A stretch of 64,000 bases of DNA from assembly GCA_038496445.1 (NCBI GenBank), contig JALMLS010000050.1, forward strand, positions 23,046 to 87,045, in the 5' to 3' direction. Made by a program: the position numbers and the translations under genes. Position 1 is the first letter of the stretch. Every line of letters starts with the position of its first letter. The notes under the pieces are model-generated. The model worked only from the letters and a program-made list of their open reading frames with translations. It was not told the origin of the DNA and made no database searches. This DNA is from Trichosphaerium sp. ATCC 40318. Its lineage: Eukaryota > Protista > Tubulinea. Shown here in pieces: positions 14,025 to 56,277 of this stretch.

Positions 14025-14480
14025 TTAAGCATAGGTAGGTTGTTTCTTCTTGCGAGCAACAAGTACGCATCCAACAATGCATCCAATACAACAGCCCAAA
14101 AGAGCAATACCACCTAACAAATAGTCACGTGAGAACAGGAAACAAAAACAACAATGGGGAAGGGAAAGAAAAAACGTACCAATGATAGCAACGGGTAGTA
14201 CCCATTTCTTCAGACACGCTGAGCCAACGACTTGATCCGTACAACATTCTGCCATTATACCAGCATCTTTATTCATAATAGTGCCACTGCATGTACAGCA
14301 AAAATCCCAACCATTGTACTCAATAAACAACTCATTTGCTGGACAACTTGTATCTAGAGTTACTTCACAGCTTATGCCATCAGTATCTGGCCCTGACGAC
14401 ATTAGTTTCGTCTCTGCAAGGAACGTAGAGGCGCATAGGTATGCGAAAGATAGTATTAGGACGAGAGTAGTTGCTGTCAT
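14025..14480 (-). CDS. Small Cys-rich single-pass membrane protein, paralog A (one intron ~14114-14178)
   Basis: Signal peptide MTATTLVLILSFAYLCAS, Cys-rich ectodomain, TM WVLPVAIIG|GIALLGCCIGCIVGCVLV, basic stop-transfer RKKKQPTYA; near-identical neighbour at 15481. Confidence 0.85.
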   Translation of the reverse strand: MTATTLVLILSFAYLCASTFLAETKLMSSGPDTDGISCEVTLDTSCPANELFIEYNGWDFCCTCSGTIMNKDAGIMAECCTDQVVGSACLKKWVLPVAIIGTFFLSLPHCCFCFLFSRDYLLGGIALLGCCIGCIVGCVLVARKKKQPTYA

Positions 14481-15480: not shown

Positions 15481-15933
15481 TTAAGCATAGGTAGGTTGTC
15501 TCTTCTTGCGAGCACAAAGTACACATCCAACAATACATCCAATACAACAGCCCAAAAGAGCGATACCGGCTAACAAACAGTCACGTGGGAACATGAAACA
15601 AAAAAGAAAGGAAAAGGGAAAAAACGTACCAACGATAGCAACGGGTAGTACCCATTTCTTCAGACATGCTGAGCCAACGGCTTGACCCATACAACATCCT
15701 GCCATTATACCAGCGTCTTTATTTATCCAACTACCACTGCATGTACAGCAAAAATCAAAACCACCGTACGACATAAACACTTCTTTTGGATCAGGACAAC
15801 TTGTGGCTTGAGTTTTTTCACAGTTTATGCCATAAGTATCTGGTCCTGACGACATTAGTTTTGTCTCTGCAAGGAATGTAGAGGCACATAGGCATGCGAA
15901 AGATAGTATTAGGACGAGAGTAGTTGCTGTCAT
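15481..15933 (-). CDS. Small Cys-rich single-pass membrane protein, paralog B (one intron)
   Basis: Same architecture and intron position as 14025-14480; shares upstream GATAAATATGGGTGTAACTCACAACTTT and downstream flank. Confidence 0.85.
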   Translation of the reverse strand: MTATTLVLILSFACLCASTFLAETKLMSSGPDTYGINCEKTQATSCPDPKEVFMSYGGFDFCCTCSGSWINKDAGIMAGCCMGQAVGSACLKKWVLPVAIVGTFFPFSFLFCFMFPRDCLLAGIALLGCCIGCIVGCVLCARKKRQPTYA

Positions 15934-19919: not shown

Positions 19920-20818
19920 GAACTACCAAAAAGTCAATTCAAGGAGACTTTACTGCAAACGTGTTGTGTTCACAAGCGTAAATAGAAGCAAACAAAATGT
20001 AAGTTCCAAACAAGCCAGAATCGGATTGACTTTGTACAATAAAGGGACGATACAAACTGTGAGTTTTACTTTTAGTGGGCCTAATACCCATATGACTGAT
20101 CTCATACTTAAAATCAAAGTACTATCTCGAAGAATTATGAATTTTTTGTGAATTTCAGACAGTCCGAAGATCTACAAACCCTACGAGGGTTGAAATAAGT
20201 TATAGCGTGCGGTTGATCGAGAGACTGCTATATTCTGTTTTTACTTATTTTGTACACTTTCCTTATTTCCTATGAAGCCAACAACATCCTCGAAGGCCCT
20301 CTAGGTTGTCGCCAATCGTTTTATTAACAAATCAAGCTTCCGAAAGCAAATCTAGCTATGTCACGCGTATAATTATCCGCCCGTAAAGGTATGAGGTTGT
20401 TTTAACAACTCGCAAACTCTTCACGAGTTCTGAACAGTTATTTGGTCAATTTCATGCCAGATGATGGCGGTTTTATCAAGGCGAGGTAACTCAGTGCCAA
20501 AGCACCGCCCGCGCTCGCATAGAGTATTACCACACGCGGATTGATAAAATAACCAATGATCTTCAATGAAACCACGCATGGCGTTCAGCACAGCCTAAAC
20601 AGGTTTCTCGTCCTAAAATCACGTGACCGTACTTATTTTAACCTAAGTAAAACAAAGTAGCAATAATTGGTGTACTTACGTTTATGTAACGAAGGATTTG
20701 CCTTTAACCACGTTTGCGGGTCAAAAATGGATTGATACAGTTCACATGTGCTTTTTACTTTTTTTTTTCATTTCTACTGCATTTTTCATGCGTGTGACAC
20801 TTGAAGAACGCCAAAACA

Positions 20819-23800
20819 ATGGAAGTAAATAAGTTTACGCTACTTGGTGGTCCTCTAACCGGTAAATCGTATGCGTAATTTACCCTTTTTACTTCATCTC
20901 AAGTACTAATTTTCTGTTTTCTAAAAAGAGCTTTGGTTGAAAGGGTAAGAATATAAAGGGAAAAAGAAAACGTTTCACTCTTTCTGTCACGTTTTGTATT
21001 TTGTGACTTTGTTTATATCTTTAGTTGGTCAATAATACGTATACAGATCAATGGACTCAAACATTTGAAGGCGCGTTAATGTATATATAAGTATTTTAAA
21101 ACTTTTTCTAGATCATTTTCGTCATCCACTTGTTATTGGTGGTATAATTAATGTCATTGATATCACAGGTAACTTCTCTGTTCTTTTTTATTATTTCGTC
21201 CCGTACAATTGTAATAATTTATTACAGATGTTAGTGGTGATGCTGACGCACGTGCGCACATGGAAGGTGTTATAAGGCACGTGAAAATGGACCTCGACGC
21301 CAAAACCAAAAAAAAAAACTACCAAACATTCCGAATATATTTTCTTTTGCACTGCTTTCTCTCATTGTTTGTCTTTAGGGATAACTGGGCTTTCTTGTTA
21401 GTTTTCTCAGTTAAGGATAGAGACGGGTATGAATTGGTAAGTACACAATTTGAGTTGCCGTACTTGGTGTATCTAACCAAACAAACATTAAGATGATTCC
21501 ATATCATGACAAGTTGAAGGCTATCAAAGGTGACTTTCTTGAGGCGTCACTTTTCAATAAGGATTAAAATGAGATCTTTTTAGGACCTGCTGGGTTTAAA
21601 GTAGTTCTTGTTGGGACTATGAGTGATAGTAAAGATAGATGTATTACAACAGCTGAAGGAGAGAAAATTGCAGGGTTTGTGTGCTTTCAAATAACGCGTA
21701 TTTTTGGTGATCTTTCTTAGATATATGAAGTGTGATTATATTGAGACGTCTGCTAAGGGTGATGTTAATGTATCTACACCTTTTATAAATCTTGCAAAGC
21801 AACTTGAAGGATGGGAAATACCAAAAAGAAAAAACGCCCAAAAAAAAAGAAAAAAAGTAAAACATACTGTAAAAAACTTTACCGTACGTGATATGAGCCC
21901 ACGTGATTATAATTTTTGATTTTGATTTTTTGTAAGTATTAATTTTTGTTCACGTGATATTTTAGAAACCTGTTCATCGTAAACGAAAGCAACCTAAAAG
22001 AGCGAAACCATTGGCAAGAAAAGGTGTAAAACAAAGAAAGAAAAAAGGCTTTTTGAAAATATCTTTCTCAAAAAGAAAGCGCCGAAAAGATAATCCAATA
22101 ACAAGAGCAGAGTTAATGCTACCAAAACGTAGACAAGGACGTCATATAGCTTCTCAAGGTAAGTAAGAAACAATAGATACAGATACAGCTCAAAGATTTT
22201 CATCTCAAAAGAGATGAAAATAAAAAGAAATAGGGTTAACTTTCTTCTATGATTTTGGCACTTACACTTATTTAGGTATTGCATTGATACTACTTGGTAT
22301 GGGCTTAAATCCTTTGGGAATGGGTTCAGGTGAAAACAAGCAACCAGAAAGAAATTACAACACGTGAGGGTTCCTCCTTCTTTTAAACGAATTTTATCAT
22401 TACTTCTTACAATAATATAGAGCTCCTACGCCGCGCAAGCCACGGAAGTCTGTCAAAGAGACGTTCCCTTCTCCTAAGCTAAGAAAATTATCAAGGACAA
22501 ACACACAGCCAGCAATGCCAACCGTAAGTAAAGATAAGCCACTCTGGCTTTAACTAAAGTACTCTATTATTAGATGCTCAACTCAAGTTACCGAAATACA
22601 CGAATTGCCAGTATAAAAAGAAGAAAACATAGTAGCGCCAGAGGACATCGAAGAAATATGACCGAAGGTGTCTCATCGCAAGCAATAAAGAGGAATAGTC
22701 CTGTAGGCGTTGGTGGAGGCGATTTCTTGTCGGTGGGAACAAGACCACGAGCAAGTACGTGTCATGTTGTTTGTGCAGCCATTTTTCGATTGTAACACGT
22801 GTTAGCGAGTAAATCTAGGTTTGTGCCTCCACCGGACAGAAGAGCACTTATTGCTGCTATCACTGCAGAATTAATGTCTCCTCTCGTTGATTCATACTCA
22901 GAAGAGTCTTATACAGACGATGAGTACTCATACTCTGATGAAGAATACACTGACGAGTCCGAAGGTAACTGAAAATTATTTGCCATCCTGTTTTCCATTT
23001 GCCACTATTTCGATTAGTTTGCCCCTAATCAATGTTACTAGATATAAGTGCAGAAAACTCTTCTTTAAGTATGGAAAACGCGTCACAATCTTTGAAATCA
23101 GCCCCTTCAAGAATAGTTTCTCCAACACCTCGTGCATCTTCTCCCTTGGCTTCTTCTTTCTCTGCGCCAAGAATTGCAATCAAACATTCCTCACCACTAT
23201 CAGCTACACAACCACGTGTTGAGATCCGTAGACCTTCTGCAACAAGTGGAGACTTACCACCGCGCTTGCCAACGAGACCAAGTTTTGGAACACCACCTCC
23301 ATCTCCTAAAACAGCTCATAGATTTATAAACCCTCAACCTGCTGTCTTATCGCCAACTCCAAAAAGACCATCTCCTTATGGTAGGCCGTCTCTTAGGATG
23401 CCTACAAGTCGTTCTCCATCACCACCTGGAACCAGCCCAACGCCGAGCAGATCTCCTTCACCAACAGCAACCTTAACCACTTTGAGTACTTCACCTTATG
23501 GAAGTAGATCACCTTCGCCTCCGACAAGTCCTCTAGCAGTACCAATGAATGGGAGTAGGTCGCCCTCACCACCATCTCCTGTGTTACCTCGGGTTAATGG
23601 ACATGAGCAACCAGTATCCCATAAATACTCTGTGAATGGAGGAAGGAAACCAAGTACTGTCATCACGCCGGCGTATGATTCCTTTAATTTATATTAAAAA
23701 ACTGTATTTAACACTTCTTAGTCCGCCATCTCGAAAAAGCCAACAGCCCTCACTTACACCAAATCAAGGAATGTTGGCACGAGAAAAAGGAGAAAAAGGT

Positions 23801-25337
23801 AAATCTCGAACCCACAGCATGATATCACGTGCTATGACGCAAACAATGTATAAACCCTTTATTTTTAGAACGGCTAAAACGGATGTCTACAGTTTTAAAG
23901 AACAGAAATAGTGCATTACCTTACAAAGAGCTTGAAGCTCTTGTAGAAGTTCGTGAAGAGTCTACAGGAGAGATAATAAAGAAAGGAAGATGTACGAGTT
24001 TTAATAATTCTGGTATTGTTCAACAAGGATCTTACACTTGCGTAGGGCGTGGTATACTAGTAGTGGGCAAGATTTTGACTTCCTTTTTTTTCACGGTTGC
24101 TCACTTTTACTTTGCAGTTAAGCGGTTCGCTGGATTTCTTGATGGCGTTTCTCCGAGGCAAGAAAAGAATAGTTTGACACAGTTCAAAAGAGAATCAGCA
24201 TTTTTAAAATCCTTGAAAGGCCACACGAACTTACACATGGTACATAGTTTCATGAGTTAACCAAATTTTTCTAATGTTTTTTTGAAAGTTTGTTGGCGCA
24301 TGCATGCCTCCTGATCCGTTGTGTATCGTTATGGAGTTTTGCAATACAACACTAGTAGGTCACATGACAAAAAGAAGCACATTTTCTCCAGGTCATATTA
24401 TTGGAATTCTCAAAGGGATTTGCGCTGGTACAAATTGTTCTCATGTGGCATTTTTTATTTATTTTTTTTAGGAATGCTTCATTTGTCCTATGAGGACCTT
24501 ATTCATGTCAACCTTGGTAAAGTTCAAGAAGCTTTACCTTGTTTTCTTATTGTTAATAGCTGCACGAAATATTCTTATTGATGGCGGTGGTGTACCTAAA
24601 ATAACTGGGTTTTGTACGAGGAATCAAAGCAAAAAAACAGTTCTAAGTTTTCTTTACCACTAGCATTCCTTCGTAGAAAAAACGAAGATTTTTCAAATAC
24701 ACAAGCAAGGAAACCTATATTATTAAAGTGGTTACCACCAGAAGCACTAAGCAAAAAAAACTATTCTCTCAAAACAGGTATGCAAATCAAGAATCTTCTT
24801 TGTTTTTTTCAACAAGTTCAAAAACTTCAAGACTTGTTCAGTACCACTCACTTCGTAAGATTAATGCTGTTTTAGATATTTGGTCTTTTGGTGTTGTACG
24901 TTTTTGCTTGTTTGTTACTTGGCTCAAAAAACTTTGAGAGCTTCCCACACAAGAACTAAACTATGTAATGTAGGTACTTTATGAAATTTTTTGTGGCAGC
25001 GAGCCTTACCCTGCACTCAGCTCATCAAGGGCACGTGATAAAGTTTCCTTAACTTTTAAAAATCTGACACTTTACAGGCTGCAGAACTGGTTGAAAGTAA
25101 TAGTTTGAGACCATACATACCACCCATCTCTGGAGTAAGCAAAAACCTCTTTTTCAACTCGTTTATGTATACTTTGTTTTTGTTGACTTTTTTGTCTTAA
25201 AGGTTTCAGATATAATGAGAAGTTGTTTGGATTATGATCCACTCAAAAGACCTTCATTTGGAAATATACAAAACCAACTTGATAACTTGATACCAGAAAA
25301 TATACCAAAGCGTGTGGTCAGAGATCCAACATCATAA
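20819..25337 (+). CDS. Fusion protein: atypical Ras-family GTPase, basic/Ser-Pro linker and tyrosine-kinase-like pseudokinase
   Basis: G1 GGPLTGKS, switch I QTFED, G3 DVSGD, G4 GTMSD, G5 ETSAK. An intron at ~21884-21965 joins the GTPase in frame to KPVHRKRKQPKRAK... Kinase fold: VVKRF, FKRESAFLKSL, FVGACMPPDPLCIVMEF, HVNLAARNILI, KITGFS, KWLPPEAL, DIWSFGVVLYEI, CLDYDPLKRPSF. Confidence 0.8.
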
Positions 25338-29468: not shown

Positions 29469-32012
29469 ATGGCTAAGTTAAGAGGTAAAATCGCCTTTCT
29501 ATCGTATCTATAATACATCTCTCGCGAAATAACAAGTCTGTATAGCGTTTTATTTAGTTGTGGCAATTATTTTGCTCACGAGATGTTATGCTGCTCAAGA
29601 CACTTGTAACAGAGAATGCGAAGGTGACTTATGTAATTTAAAGGCTACAGATTGTCCTTGCAGTGTATGCGTTGACACATGTACTGATGACGGCACTACA
29701 GCTGTCTGTGCCTGTGCTTGCCCAGATACTGGAAAAGTACGCAATCTCTTACAACAAACAACTCCGACGGTCTATATGTCTCATTTTATGCAAAGATTCT
29801 GATTGGAGACTTTGTTTTTCGCGATATAGAAGAATCAAATGGGGATCCAGATGGGATACAGAGTAAGATATAAAACTAATACCCGGACAGAACAAACGGA
29901 GCGAACATTGGCTTTTTTTTTTCTTTTTTTCAGAAAGATCTAGAAGTTTTTTGATGTTTTTTTGACGACCACGTGTAGATTTCGAACCTGGTATTCCTGG
30001 AGCTCGTCTTTACTTATACAATAGCGCTAATGTTAGTATTGATTCTAATGTAACTAATTTTGATGGTGAATACTACTTTGAAGTTGATCCAAATACACAA
30101 TACATGGTAATGATAAAAAGCTTTTCAAAATGAGCGAAAAAGATAATAATCACAAATTGAAATTCTCATTTTTTTTACACATAGATATGCGTCAGTGTCA
30201 ATTCAGTATCTTCGCCGAATATAATGGTACGGATATAATTATATGAGTTATTGTATTCTAATATTACAAACGTAGATACCAACTTTACCAAACGTTGGTA
30301 GCGATGGCACGTGTCAAATGAGAGAAATAAAACCAGAAAAAAAAAAAAGACCAATATTAATGTAAAATAGATACTATAGATTCTGATGGTATTCCAGAAC
30401 AACGTGATTTAGGAAATGGCATTGAAGTACGTTTAATAGAAAAATATTATAATCAATAGAGAACTGACTTAGCTTGTTTAATTAGAATGCTACTTGTGCT
30501 ATATTTGTTACACCAGACGCTTCCGTTGTAGTAGGTGGGACAGTTTTTTACGTTGTGTTTATTACTGATACTGTAAAGATTGGTCAATAGATTTCGGCTT
30601 CATACTTGCTCCTGCCGGGTGTGGAGACCGTGTGTGGTTAGATATGGACGAAGATGGATTACAAGGACCAAGCGAAGTCGGAATTCCAGGCGTACAATAG
30701 TTGTTTTTTGAAATGTTGTAAAATTGAATCTATTTCTAGCTTCTAGTATTGCTGATAGATCTCAATACTGGTATAGAGCTCCAAAGAACTGTTACAGATG
30801 AAGATGGATTATACTTGTTTAAGCTTGACGCAAGATCAGAAGTAGCAATATGCGTCGATTTCAAGTACAATCTTTTTTATCAAAGAACTTTCTTCTTTTC
30901 TTCCTATTGACTGTTCGTTAGTGATGCGATGTCCCTCCGTCCGACAATAAATGTGGATGGATTTCCTGAATTAAATTCTGATGGCGCTCTGACGCCATAC
31001 AATGGAGATGTACGGAACTTTGTCGTCAATACTCACCAAAATGACACAAGCTGACTCTTTTTTTTTTAAAGATACTTTCTTGCAATACGAGTAAAGCTGC
31101 ACCAACATATGGCGTGTATAATCTTGACATCGATTTCGGTTTTGTATTTGATGATGGCAGTCCTACGTCTTCACCTACGCAAGGACCTCCAACCAACCCA
31201 CCAACAACTATACCAACACCGCCACCTACAAGCCAACCAACATCAACGGTGGCTCCCCCAACGGCACAACCAACAGCAACCCCAACCGCTGTACCGACTC
31301 CAAACCCAACTTCAATCCCTTCCCAACCACCAACTGCCATACCAACAGCAACACCAACTGCTATACCAACAGCAACGCCAACTGCCGTAACGACTTCAAA
31401 TCCAACTTCAATCCCTTCCCAACCGCCAACTGCCATACCAACAGCAACGCCAACTGCTACGCCGACAGCAACGCCACCAGCAGACCAACCTGTAGCTCCA
31501 CCAACTAATGTGCCAACACCGAATCCAACCGTGCAACCTACAGCTGTAACATTGCCTCCACCGACTAGTCAACCAACAGCAGCTACAACAGCACCAACTC
31601 CACAACCTGTGTCGACTCCAACAGCTTCTCAAACAGCTTCACCTACAGCTGGTACTACAACGCCAGTAGCCACAAATGCCCCTGTTCCTGTTGTCACAGA
31701 CGCACCCCAAACTGCGCAACCTGTGGCTCCTTTTCCATCTAGTAGTTTTGTAACACTTGCGTGTCTTAACTTGGATGCATCTAGCACATGCCAGTACGCC
31801 TAAACCCTTTTTTCTTTCACTGAAAAGAAGTTTTGTAAACCAAACACCTTCGCTGAGTTTGTGTTAGGTGTACTAGAGTTGCATGTGATTGCGACGGAAG
31901 ATTTGGTCCATGTCAATGCACAAGGCCTCCTGGAAATTTCTTGACGTGTATTACAGCTTATTTTGACCAAGATGTATACTTAGGAAGCATTTTTTGTTGT
32001 GCTGGTGCATAA
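29469..32012 (+). CDS. Secreted protein: Cys-rich N-terminus, two SdrD B-like (Cna-B-type) domains, Pro/Thr mucin stalk, Cys-rich C-terminus
   Basis: IGDFVFRD...DGIQ..EPGIPGARLYLYN...TNFDGEYYF...DSDG...IDFGF, then GDRVWLDMDEDGLQGPSEVGIPG...TVTDEDGLYLF...NSDG...DIDFGF; PT-rich ORF 31114-31803; last exon CTRVACDCDGRFGPCQC...FCCAGA*. Confidence 0.85.
31300..31478 (+). repeat. Internal ~96-bp coding duplication in the mucin stalk (NPTSIPSQPPTAIPTATPTA x2)
   Basis: ccaacttcaatcccttcccaacc(a/g)ccaactgccataccaacagcaac occurs twice, 96 bp apart. Confidence 0.8.
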
Positions 32013-37776: not shown

Positions 37777-38825
37777 TTACAACCTTTTGGGTGTGTCTTT
37801 CTTAAACATGTAACCAGAGAATTGTTTCTCACCTCGTTCATTCCAAGAACTAATCTGACTACGTAATCCATTCTTTATTTTGTAACTTTTCTTCATTTGG
37901 CCATTACTGTACCACTCAGTATACATCTTATCTATAATACCTCTGTTATAAAAACAACATATCTTGGGTTTCCCAGATGCATACCACTCCCTGTACTCTC
38001 CATTAAGTTTACCATTCGAAAAATTTTGTTTTTTAATCAAGGTTCCTTCAATGGACCATTCCTTTGCTTCTCCTTCTAGTTTACCCTTATTATTGTAATT
38101 CTCCTCAAATCGAATGTCATTATGGCGACAACCTTTCCAAGATCCTTGCTTCTTACCATGATGGTAGTAACCCTGACAAACTATACTTTTTCTGAATCCG
38201 TACTCTGTATAAAACCCATGCTTAACACCATTTACACAAGTCACTTCTTCATTACCAATTGTACATAACCCTTCTAACAAACCATTTTTATAAAACAGCT
38301 TCTTTTTAAGACATTTCCATTTATCCCACTCTTTGTACAGTCCTTGTAATACATCATTGTTATAGTTGCAAACTATTTTTTGTTTTGTGTCTTCAAACCA
38401 TTCAGAGTACTTTCCATTGAGTTTGTCGTTGTTGTAATGGCATACCTTTCTACAGTTTCCGTTTTTATACCATTCTTTTATTTCACCATGGCGTGTACCA
38501 CCGCTGTAAATGATTTGACTTTTTAGGTTTGAAGAAGGGCCACTACCACGCTCAGCTGGGTACCAATACGACCAACGTCCTACCTTGCACAAGTCCGCGT
38601 TGTAGTGCGTGAGTTTAGCTGCTGTTTTGGACAGTACGTGGTACTTACAAAATATTATTTTGTCAAGTTCGCAAATATCCTGCTGAAGCTCTGGAGGTAA
38701 GTCTAAAAGCGCAGTAGGCAAATCACCTAATAGTTATTACATAGTGGACGCTTTTATAGTGTAACTATACCGTGTAGGTGTTCGTAGGCTCTTGATTTGC
38801 TTTTGCGGTGGACAGAACGACTCAT
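37777..38825 (-). CDS. F-box-like + MORN-variant (YwqK-type) repeat protein
   Basis: LLDLPPELQQDI N-terminus, then repeats such as HGEIKEWYKNGN, NGKYSEWFED, NGEYREWYASGK. One 44-nt 5' intron (~38727-38770) followed by a ~950-nt exon. Confidence 0.85.
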
Positions 38826-55644: not shown

Positions 55645-56277
55645 TTATATTATACTTTTAGACGTTGATAAAGAAATATTAGTCAAGATTGACGTCTCTT
55701 TTCCAAACTGAAAAACTTTATGCTCAAACAAAGTTCCCGTTAAAGTATACCACATTGATTCACCATGTCTCTTTCCATTATCATATGTAAATACAGTCTG
55801 AAGCATACCATTACCATGCCAATACCTAAACTCACCATGTGGTATATTATCCTTGAACTGTAGATGATACCTCATCTGTCCATCTTCATACCAAGTTTTT
55901 ACATCTCCATTACGCACACCATTATCATACATGACTTGTTTCTTCATTTTCCCATTATCGTAATGAGATGTATACAATCCATGTAGCTTATTGTTGTTAT
56001 AAGAGCATCTTGTAAGTGTTTGACCAGAGTCATTCATCTCAATGTACTTCCCGTGGAGCAAACCGTTTTTGAAGTAACATTTTATTTTTAACCTGTTTGA
56101 CGAGTCATACCTTCTGAAACATCCATTCTTTTCCAATGAATCGTTAAATCTACTAGTCTTTGCTGCATACAAACAAAGTGAAGGCCATTTTATGAATATA
56201 TCTCCACTTGTCTCAAAAATGATATGTTGAAGCTCCAACGGCAATTCCATAACACACATAGGCGTCTGGTAGGCCAT
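55645..56277 (-). CDS. Intronless F-box-like + MORN-variant (YwqK-type) repeat protein
   Basis: VMELPLELQHIIFE, then LHGKYIEMNDSG, LHGLYTSHYDNGK, NGDVKTWYEDGQ, HGEFRYWHGNGM; single 210-aa ORF. Confidence 0.88.
   Translation of the reverse strand: MAYQTPMCVMELPLELQHIIFETSGDIFIKWPSLCLYAAKTSRFNDSLEKNGCFRRYDSSNRLKIKCYFKNGLLHGKYIEMNDSGQTLTRCSYNNNKLHGLYTSHYDNGKMKKQVMYDNGVRNGDVKTWYEDGQMRYHLQFKDNIPHGEFRYWHGNGMLQTVFTYDNGKRHGESMWYTLTGTLFEHKVFQFGKETSILTNISLSTSKSII

Follow-up and report, generated by a model that had tools for sequence, protein, structure and literature searches.

Does a single gene of Trichosphaerium sp. ATCC 40318 encode both a Ras-family GTPase and a kinase fold stripped of its catalytic residues, or do two neighbouring genes lie side by side? 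The locus in question occupies positions 20819-25337 of the window, a 64,000-nucleotide stretch of contig JALMLS010000050.1 (assembly GCA_038496445.1, positions 23,046 to 87,045 of the forward strand). An original prediction for this DNA proposed one gene fusing an atypical Ras GTPase to a doubly inactivated tyrosine-kinase-like domain. We found that the Ras switch and the dead kinase can be joined as one 961-residue protein, a fusion that is plausible and unproven. Our preferred reading is one long open reading frame (ORF) for Ras domain, linker and pseudokinase with a nested internal transcription start, to which we assign a probability of roughly 0.48; we put two separate genes at rather short of even odds. 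Judged on sequence-intrinsic evidence, the fused long isoform is about an even call. Both modules are transcribed and spliced, and their degenerate codons are real.

RNA evidence was taken from assembled contigs of four RNA runs of the organism (X1, X2, X3 and X4), of which X2 is by far the largest. X1 and X3 are independent libraries, and X1 stems from another study. Given the mapping method, a coverage hole in these contigs proves nothing by itself. Profile and structure searches were performed exon by exon rather than on the spliced 961-residue protein. Coding potential was scored as codon log-likelihood in bits for each frame, with RNA-confirmed linker exons scored leave-one-out for the comparison of codon usage, and openness and ATG absence were judged against dinucleotide shuffles. 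Kinase motifs were assigned through the conserved neighbours LAARN and KIT-x-F together with established knowledge of kinase subdomains.

Rebuilt and corrected against the RNA joints, the exon chain on the plus strand is open from ATG 20819 to TAA 25335-25337 and comprises 27 exons, 2,886 coding bases and 961 codons. This bears out the predicted passage from the Ras exons through a polybasic exon and a Ser/Pro-rich linker to a kinase fold. All 26 intron boundaries are GT-AG or GC-AG, and the locus is intron-dense, with introns of 41-117 nucleotides and a GC content of 37.6%. The modules would be joined by three putative splices, 21883|21966, 22158|22276 and 22754|22806. If 21884-21965 remains unspliced, the Ras frame closes at TGA 21917-21919, the stop already noticed in the original prediction, and yields a 201-residue Ras-only product. 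At the other end, an AATAAA at 25336 overlaps the kinase stop. Compared with the RNA, the exons carry eight variants, six of them synonymous, and one 3-nucleotide in-frame deletion. The Ser/Pro-rich exon carries this deletion (23613) as well as a P>S substitution (23611); both are common to X1, X3 and X4, being strain or allele differences.

The structure of the Ras part was read directly from transcripts. Each of its eight introns is seen as a joint in contigs of X2, X3 and X4, and the cDNAs begin at 20776 in X3 and, next to the template-switch oligo, at 20813 in X4, giving 5' untranslated regions (UTRs) of 6-43 nucleotides. Residues 1-147 are numbered as in H-Ras, without indels (Table 1). 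G1, T35 and G5 are intact, as had been predicted, and the G1 motif GxxxxGK[ST] arises where exons 1 and 2 are joined, a splice that the RNA confirms. The predicted aspartate at the Q61 equivalent and the change of NKxD to TMSD are likewise present, and the exons are RNA-confirmed without base differences. Additionally, the equivalents of G12 and G13 are replaced too, by proline and leucine.

Against solved structures, the G4 exon aligned its TMSD on the NKSD of Sec4, and the last Ras exon matched RalA (E=0.0023) as well as M-Ras and Di-Ras. The last exon also matched Pfam Ras (PF00071, positions 134-160, E=0.0086), its single-exon score of 16.1 bits lying under the 21.6 cut-off. Pfam scans of the very short exons gave no match, such pieces falling below the length that the HMMER filters need. 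Because these matches are to Sec4, RalA, M-Ras, Di-Ras and Pfam Ras, we assign the GTPase to the Ras/Ral type and not to Roc. In Ras biochemistry, loss of G12, G13 and Q61 abolishes both intrinsic hydrolysis and that assisted by GTPase-activating proteins (GAPs), substitutions at N116 and K117 raise nucleotide off-rates, and D119 keeps guanine specificity. The domain found here is probably an atypical, hydrolysis-impaired member of the Ras family; it may bind nucleotide without hydrolysing it and possibly exchanges it fast. No CAAX box occurs at either possible C-terminus (...SPRDYNF if unspliced, ...RDPTS if fused), in agreement with the original prediction, and there is no cysteine between residues 140 and 400.

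Alternative processing was also seen within the Ras exons. In X2, the 102-nucleotide intron 21277-21378 is retained in an unspliced contig (21226-21399) at a depth similar to that of the spliced form. As the length of this intron is divisible by three and its frame carries no stop, a retained copy would add 34 residues behind switch II. For the ORF with the intron retained (21230-21436), matches were at chance level only. In X4, introns 1-2 are unspliced in a contig spanning 20884-21053.

The kinase part is spliced as well. Contigs of X1, X3 and X4 contain the joints of introns 22965-23041, 23673-23721, 23799-23868, 23992-24045, 24067-24117, 24240-24288, 24428-24471, 24517-24559 and 24614-24663, and the last four introns of the locus are implied by contig pieces. 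The original prediction had read HRD as HVN in a tyrosine-kinase-type loop and DFG as GFS, and had allowed that these codons, and TMSD, might be sequencing errors. The HVN and GFS codons are unchanged in the contigs of X1, X3 and X4, and the DVSGD and TMSD codons show no differences in the Ras contigs; since the RNA agrees at all four, they are not errors. A pseudokinase is a kinase fold without at least one of the β3 Lys, the HRD Asp and the DFG Asp. Because both aspartates are replaced here and the replacements are RNA-confirmed, the domain is a pseudokinase by definition, as had been claimed, and is predicted to be inactive.

Other landmarks of the fold are partly preserved. The β3 lysine K716 (in VVVK) and the αC glutamate E740 are kept; the Gly loop, which the original prediction had called absent, is degenerate (STGEIIKKG, residues 696-710), and the APE motif reads PPE. 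Three collinear exon matches to Pfam PK_Tyr_Ser-Thr (PF07714) cover profile positions 66-110, 154-184 and 234-258 with 11.9, 13.5 and 16.6 bits, each below the 23.1 cut-off. Among solved structures, the hinge exon matched KSR, ITK and VEGFR2, the best being KSR (weak, E 0.85), and the P+1 loop exon matched CSK and Src. For the αH-I exon of the C-lobe, a JAK JH2 segment was best (E 7e-4), with further matches to KIT, TYK2 and JAK2 JH2. Thus all solved-structure matches of the kinase exons are to kinases of the tyrosine kinase (TK) or tyrosine kinase-like (TKL) groups; the catalytic-loop exon with its intron flank had no match among solved structures.

Between the two domains, the linker exons are transcribed and spliced, as indicated by a single X2 contig that joins ~22319-22363, 22421-22522 and 22574-22723 (the first piece deduced from bin depths) and confirms the 22523>22574 splice. 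Each of the linker exons within 22276-22754 scores as coding in the chain frame only, and their variants relative to X2, 22523 C>A and 22649 C>A, are both synonymous. Further downstream, the joints 22964>23042, 23672>23722 and 23798>23869 were seen, and contigs of X1, X2, X3 and X4 cover the exons of 22806-23798. When every linker exon was scanned singly at E<=1, no Pfam family was found in the ~500 residues, including COR, whose absence had been part of the original argument.

A shorter transcript begins inside the locus. Kinase-only cDNAs have 5' ends at 22803 in X1, which includes the intronic TAG (three letters), and at 22807 in X3, where the template-switch oligo stands directly before the first base. 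Because two independent libraries agree on this end, one of them with the oligo, a kinase-only mRNA certainly exists. Its first ATG, at 22874, would give 561 residues (401-961). A lariat or branch-point artefact and strand invasion during template switching were considered as sources of these ends and ruled out, because the ends lie 2-3 nucleotides from the 3' splice site, there is no GGG nearby and the two libraries agree. Upstream of ATG 22874, positions 22808-22873 still score as coding in the chain frame (+12.7 bits versus -7.7 and -17.5, P=0.001), which argues that a longer isoform is the coding form.

Whether that longer isoform reaches the Ras domain depends on the region 21884-22275. 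The intron that the original prediction had placed at about 21884-21965 has an exact site there in phase 0 and an intron-like composition, with 49% T compared with 39% in the pooled confirmed introns, 26% in exons and ~30% in flanking intergenic DNA; no frame of it scores as coding. Its donor GTACGTGATA (21884) resembles, almost to identity, the RNA-confirmed donors GCACGTGATA (25031) and GCACGTGAAA (21277). An in-phase G[CT]ACGTG within the last 36 nucleotides of an ORF is expected ~0.3% of the time, although the heptamer is not invariably a donor. What did not come through is the splice itself, which is unseen in the four RNA runs.

The polybasic exon that would follow carries a coding signal. 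It is open in the chain frame only, the other frames having 5 and 4 stops, and just 1.7% of dinucleotide shuffles are open. Its codon score is +29.4 bits in the chain frame versus -20.1 and -13.7 (P=0.0004), and its 0.46 bits per codon equal the level of the RNA-confirmed linker exons. The 50 codons upstream of its first ATG at 22116 (21966-22115) score +20.6 bits, in both halves and in the chain frame only (P=0.003). Because this segment opens right after an in-frame TAG and holds no ATG, its start codon can come from the Ras exons only. Additionally, the polybasic character runs unbroken across the proposed 21883|21966 junction. The second candidate intron, 22159-22275, starts with a GTAAGT donor that matches the consensus perfectly and finishes with CTTACACTTATTTAG, nearly of the same form as the 3' end of confirmed intron 23992-24045; with 42% A, it is atypical for introns of the locus.

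Several observations weigh against one gene. No RNA contig in the four runs crosses any of the three putative splices. X1, X3 and X4 have zero depth over 21827-22792 though both flanks are expressed (a hole that alone proves nothing), and Ras and kinase depths are uncoupled (50 versus 8 in X3, 34 versus 9 in X4, 0 versus 9-18 in X1). The independent kinase-only 5' ends point the same way. The coding signal of 21966-22115 weakens to P=0.07 when conditioned on an open frame, and the absence of ATG from 21895-22115 (P=0.04 in shuffles) would also suit a 5' UTR. The sole AATAAA between 21563 and 22684 lies at 22219, inside the proposed 117-nucleotide intron. Lastly, the collections searched yielded neither an orthologue nor an own-genome protein model by which conservation of the architecture could be judged. 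Of the original one-gene claim, the open chain and its coding signature stand, while RNA across the junction was not seen and a separate kinase start, which the prediction had itself named as contrary evidence, was found.

Part of the missing coverage may have a technical origin. The Ras contigs end at 21739 (X4), 21777 (X3) and 21816 (X2), all before or at the edge of the A-rich tract 21820-21856, which may be a site of internal oligo-dT priming or of assembly breaks that hides the sequence downstream. With oligo-dT priming at the A9GA7 tract, SMART-type libraries would show Ras alone and lose the part from the tract to the tail, and this matches the pattern of X3 and X4. For their Ras contigs, which end before the tract at depth 33-50, a long mRNA primed internally would be a better explanation than a poly(A) tail close by. 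In X2, depth is similar across the Ras exons, the linker and the Ser/Pro-rich region (~3-6).

The database searches need to be read against the collections used. A word-indexed protein search with the 222-residue Ser/Pro-rich exon found no own-genome or orthologous model, and an exhaustive HMMER search with this exon against 1.8 billion representative proteins found no relative, just two weak low-complexity matches. Scans of metagenomes and metatranscriptomes gave no match to the exact 22-mer just past acceptor 21965, nor to an N-lobe peptide. Because these protein and metagenome searches came back without relatives, we conclude that the collections searched contain neither the source genome nor its close relatives.

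One way to divide the locus is to place a gene boundary right after TGA 21919. The first gene would encode a 201-residue Ras without a CAAX box, with 21884-21965 as its coding tail and 3' UTR; the second would start within 21920-22115, use ATG 22116 to make ~722 residues and possess a second, stronger promoter at ~22805. Such a model builds on the closed Ras ORF, the absence of RNA for the 21883|21966 splice, the uncoupled depths and the independent kinase 5' end, and it would turn the ATG-free stretch into a 5' UTR. It has to contend, however, with 50 codons before ATG 22116 that are open and coding in that frame only. A T-rich/CACGTG/TAG arrangement before 21966 resembles that before the proven 5' end at 22803-22807; the same segment, 21884-21965, is intron-like in composition and starts in phase with the confirmed donor type of the locus. 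Short intergenic gaps are usual here (~260 nucleotides from the locus to the next gene), but the 300 nucleotides past the stop contain neither AATAAA nor ATTAAA. Additionally, the Ras contigs fall short of the stop despite their depth, which would be unexpected with a tail ~100 nucleotides past the A-rich tract. We consider this arrangement unlikely.

A boundary within 22159-22320 would instead leave the polybasic exon with Ras. That gene would run to TAA 22164-22166 (~255 residues) and use the AATAAA at 22219, and the kinase gene would begin at ~22300 with ATG 22299 or 22320. From ATG 22320 the N-terminus would read MGSGENK, which resembles a myristoylation motif and precedes basic residues, an arrangement known from Src-type anchors. 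This accounts for the coding signal of the polybasic exon, yet X3 and X4 have no depth over that exon despite their Ras depth. The AATAAA is the only one in the region and follows the TAA by 53 nucleotides, but the stop itself would sit inside the perfect donor GTAAGTAAG. Similarly, the A-rich composition of 22159-22275 is unlike most introns here, whereas the segment closes with a branch-like CTTAC and TTATTTAG, which hardly differ from the end of a confirmed intron, and the phase of the segment fits the next exon. The short 5' UTRs of the locus (6-43 nucleotides for Ras) would suit the X2 linker contig that starts at ~22319, one base before ATG 22320 (as estimated from bin depths), although this start may be a low-coverage break at an X2 depth of ~3. 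We rate this second division as quite improbable.

The fused transcript could also be a rare read-through or conjoined by-product of two independent genes, with no function of its own. Linker coverage in the deepest run only, X2, at a depth of ~3, would be in keeping with this, as would the dominance of the independent kinase start in X1, X3 and X4. However, the linker exons bear a coding signature and only synonymous variants, and the coding signal upstream of both internal ATGs argues for a long form that is translated and selected. A by-product of this kind is very improbable.

Returning to the one-gene reading with a nested start, all functional statements about the locus are deduced from sequence. 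One ORF would encode an N-terminal Ras domain, a low-complexity linker of ~500 residues (polybasic, basic, acidic and Ser/Pro-rich in turn) and a C-terminal TK/TKL pseudokinase, and the start at ~22803-22807 would also yield a Ras-less mRNA for residues 401-961. The Ras domain should still bind guanine nucleotide, as the P-loop Lys/Ser, T35, DxxG, D119 and SAK are kept. With P12, L13 and D61 in place, hydrolysis should be lost, both intrinsic and GAP-assisted, and a base pocket loosened by T116 and M117 should let nucleotide exchange faster, leaving a domain that would be mostly GTP-loaded or would serve as a conformational module only. Without a prenyl anchor, localisation might depend on the polybasic/hydrophobic stretch, directing the protein to acidic membranes or the nucleus. 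The GTP-locked state and the tethering to membranes named in the original prediction are to be taken as putative.

The Ser/Pro-rich tract could supply proline-directed phosphorylation sites and docking sites for SH3 or WW domains. A kinase fold without the catalytic Asp, the Mg-binding Asp and a Gly loop would act as a docking or allosteric scaffold rather than an enzyme. Whether the scaffold has its Ras and polybasic head would then depend on the promoter chosen, and the cell could tune in this way the share of scaffold under GTPase or localisation control. What is proposed in full is a GTPase-pseudokinase switch, coupled in cis and distinct from Roco, in which a polybasic, phospho-regulatable disordered linker ties a Ras domain that is hydrolysis-dead and anchor-less to a doubly inactivated TK-like scaffold, with no COR and with a nested promoter that also releases a Ras-less scaffold isoform. 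We offer it tentatively, at somewhat less than an even chance.

The introns of the locus are themselves unusual. Four of the 26 (~15%) are GC-AG: 21071-21111 (GCGCGT), 21277-21378 (GCACGT), 24067-24117 (GCAAGA) and 25031-25077 (GCACGT). In eukaryotes the usual share is roughly 1%, and the rate in this locus is unusually high. The first three have direct RNA joints, and the fourth is deduced because contigs of X1 and X4 hold 136 letters between 24775 and 25203. A GT-AG model at this site (donor 25035, acceptor 25084) was ruled out, as it predicts 133 letters. Micro-exons were also present at 20929-20944 (16 nucleotides), 24046-24066 (21 nucleotides) and 24876-24895 (20 nucleotides); the first two are RNA-confirmed, and the 16-nucleotide exon is visible as letters between the two sides of an RNA joint.

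The palindrome CACGTG occurs 56 times in the window (for example at 20620, 21249, 21278, 21900, 21951, 22361, 22796, 23213, 23826 and 25032), compared with 5-16 copies for palindromes of comparable composition. Ten copies fall in the 4.5-kb locus, in exons, introns and donors alike, and GCACGTG donors account for the excess only partly. Window-wide, G[CT]ACGTG is weakly associated with exon-to-intron shifts in composition (p=0.047). CACGTG was considered as a promoter mark and dropped, being enriched but spread over exons, introns and donors alike. Because the distribution is unspecific and the window-wide association weak, both motifs were used solely as local support.

Table 1. Coordinates and motifs of the Ras-linker-pseudokinase locus (positions in the window; residues of the 961-residue chain).
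Feature	Position	Strand	Residues and remarks
Ras-family GTPase domain	20819-21883	+	Residues 1-189, including start of polybasic tail; nine exons, eight introns RNA-confirmed
Ras exons	20819-20868, 20929-20944, 21025-21070, 21112-21168, 21228-21276, 21379-21436, 21493-21529, 21584-21674, 21721-21883	+	
H-Ras P-loop 10-17			Here G10-G-P12-L13-T-G15-K16-S17 (GGPLTGKS)
H-Ras T35			Here T35, within TQTFED
H-Ras D57xxG60, Q61			Here D57-V-S-G60-D61 (DVSGD)
H-Ras N116-K-x-D119			Here T116-M117-S118-D119; NKxD not conserved, Asp alone kept
H-Ras S145-A-K147			Here S145-A146-K147 (ETSAK)
A-rich tract A5GA6...A9GA7	21820-21856	+	Encodes KRKNAQKKRKK; inside last Ras exon
Candidate intron, 82 nucleotides, GTACGTGATA...TTTTAG	21884-21965	+	GTACGT start, phase 0 on both sides; not in RNA
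Polybasic exon	21966-22158	+	Residues 190-254; open in chain frame; no RNA coverage
Polybasic part of linker			Residues 167-254; 42% Lys/Arg with interspersed Phe, Leu and Ile
Candidate intron, 117 nucleotides, GTAAGTAAG...CTTACACTTATTTAG	22159-22275	+	Not in RNA
Basic linker exons	22276-22363, 22421-22523, 22574-22754	+	Residues 254-378, basic; X2 contig
Candidate intron, 51 nucleotides, GTACGTGTCA...CACGTGTTAG	22755-22805	+	Splice not seen; kinase-only cDNA 5' ends at its 3' edge
Acidic exon	22806-22964	+	Contains first ATG of short transcript, 22874 (M401)
Acidic part of linker			Residues 398-431; 41% Asp/Glu
Ser/Pro/Thr-rich exons	23042-23672, 23722-23798	+	49% Ser/Pro/Thr
Ser/Pro/Thr-rich part of linker			Residues 431-667; 49% Ser/Pro/Thr
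TK/TKL-type pseudokinase	23869-25337	+	Residues ~680-961; eleven exons
Kinase exons	23869-23991, 24046-24066, 24118-24239, 24289-24427, 24472-24516, 24560-24613, 24664-24777, 24876-24895, 24974-25030, 25078-25134, 25203-25337	+	
HVN codons	24504-24512	+	H813-V-N815 in place of HRD, within HVNLAARN 813-820
GFS codons	24607-24613 and 24664-24665	+	G833-F-S835 in place of DFG

Elsewhere in the window, two tandem paralogous ORFs of 150-151 residues lie on the minus strand (14025-14480 and 15481-15933), with near-identical N-terminal signal-like segments and C-terminal Cys-rich hydrophobic segments. The pair seems to have arisen by recent tandem duplication of a gene for a small membrane protein. 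Two long intronless ORFs, also on the minus strand (37777-38721 and 55645-56277), have MORN-like repeats behind an F-box-like N-terminus amid an otherwise intron-dense window. At 31026-31803, a 229-residue Pro/Thr-rich repetitive ORF (PTxxPT repeats) is overlapped by an antisense Gly/Val-rich ORF; it is probably an exon of a mucin-like surface protein.

Should the long isoform prove real, a single chain would link a Ras-type domain to a kinase fold, lacking COR as the device for dimerisation and with both catalytic centres decayed. This would be a natural GTPase-kinase pair acting purely by conformation and scaffolding, and it would bear on the evolution of LRRK2-type cross-talk and of Ras-KSR/RAF scaffolding. 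If there are two genes, the result is ordinary, adding another atypical Ras without CAAX and another pseudokinase of amoeba type. Either way, the locus has a high rate of RNA-confirmed GC-AG introns, and transcription also starts within it, where an intron meets an exon.

Hydrolysis-deficient small GTPases are known, and a pseudoGTPase class has been conceived (PMC5593906). As in Rnd1-3 and RhoH, the equivalents of G12, G13 and Q61 are substituted while the Lys/Ser of the P-loop, the Thr of switch I and DxxG are intact. Such substitutions with otherwise intact motifs are hallmarks of constitutively GTP-bound, GAP-insensitive GTPases. Unlike Rnd1-3 and RhoH, this domain is, by the matches of its exons, of the Ras subfamily; it also has a damaged NKxD and bears no lipid-modification motif. 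Its Lys/Arg-rich tail with Phe, Leu and Ile right after the G domain recalls Rit/Rin, the hypervariable region of K-Ras4B, the RalA tail and the MARCKS effector domain; indeed, the RalA tail aligns with the first part of the polybasic stretch. Polybasic tails of the Ras and MARCKS type serve in electrostatic membrane binding. In contrast to these examples, the tract here spans ~90 residues without a cysteine and is equally like a classical nuclear localisation signal, which it could equally be.

For the kinase-like half, KSR1/2 and the JAK JH2 domains offer a parallel, being TK/TKL folds whose part in Ras-linked or receptor signalling is non-catalytic or allosteric. The exon matches to them are weak and single-exon (E 0.85 and 7e-4). 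KSR and JH2 keep more of the catalytic apparatus than this domain does and bind ATP, and neither carries a GTPase domain of its own. In the Dictyostelium kinome, ~11% of kinase domains have been predicted inactive, and a ras-like domain on a kinase is described for the Roco family only (PMC1420674). Roco proteins (LRRK1/2, DAPK1 and Dictyostelium Roco, GbpC and Pats1) share with this locus, if the fusion is real, a Ras-like GTPase and a TKL-type kinase on one polypeptide.

In Roco proteins, Roc is by definition directly followed by COR, which mediates dimerisation and couples GTPase to kinase. Here, ~500 low-complexity residues without any Pfam family separate the domains, and leucine-rich, ankyrin and WD40 repeats were all looked for in vain. 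Among GTPases, the exons resemble Ras, Ral and M-Ras and not Roc, and the kinase is predicted to be dead. Thus, on its domain content, the locus falls outside Roco: it lacks COR, its GTPase belongs to the Ras/Ral type and its kinase would be inactive. In its working, it would nevertheless stand closest to the Roco-type GTPase-kinase pair, or to the Ras-KSR relationship placed in cis.

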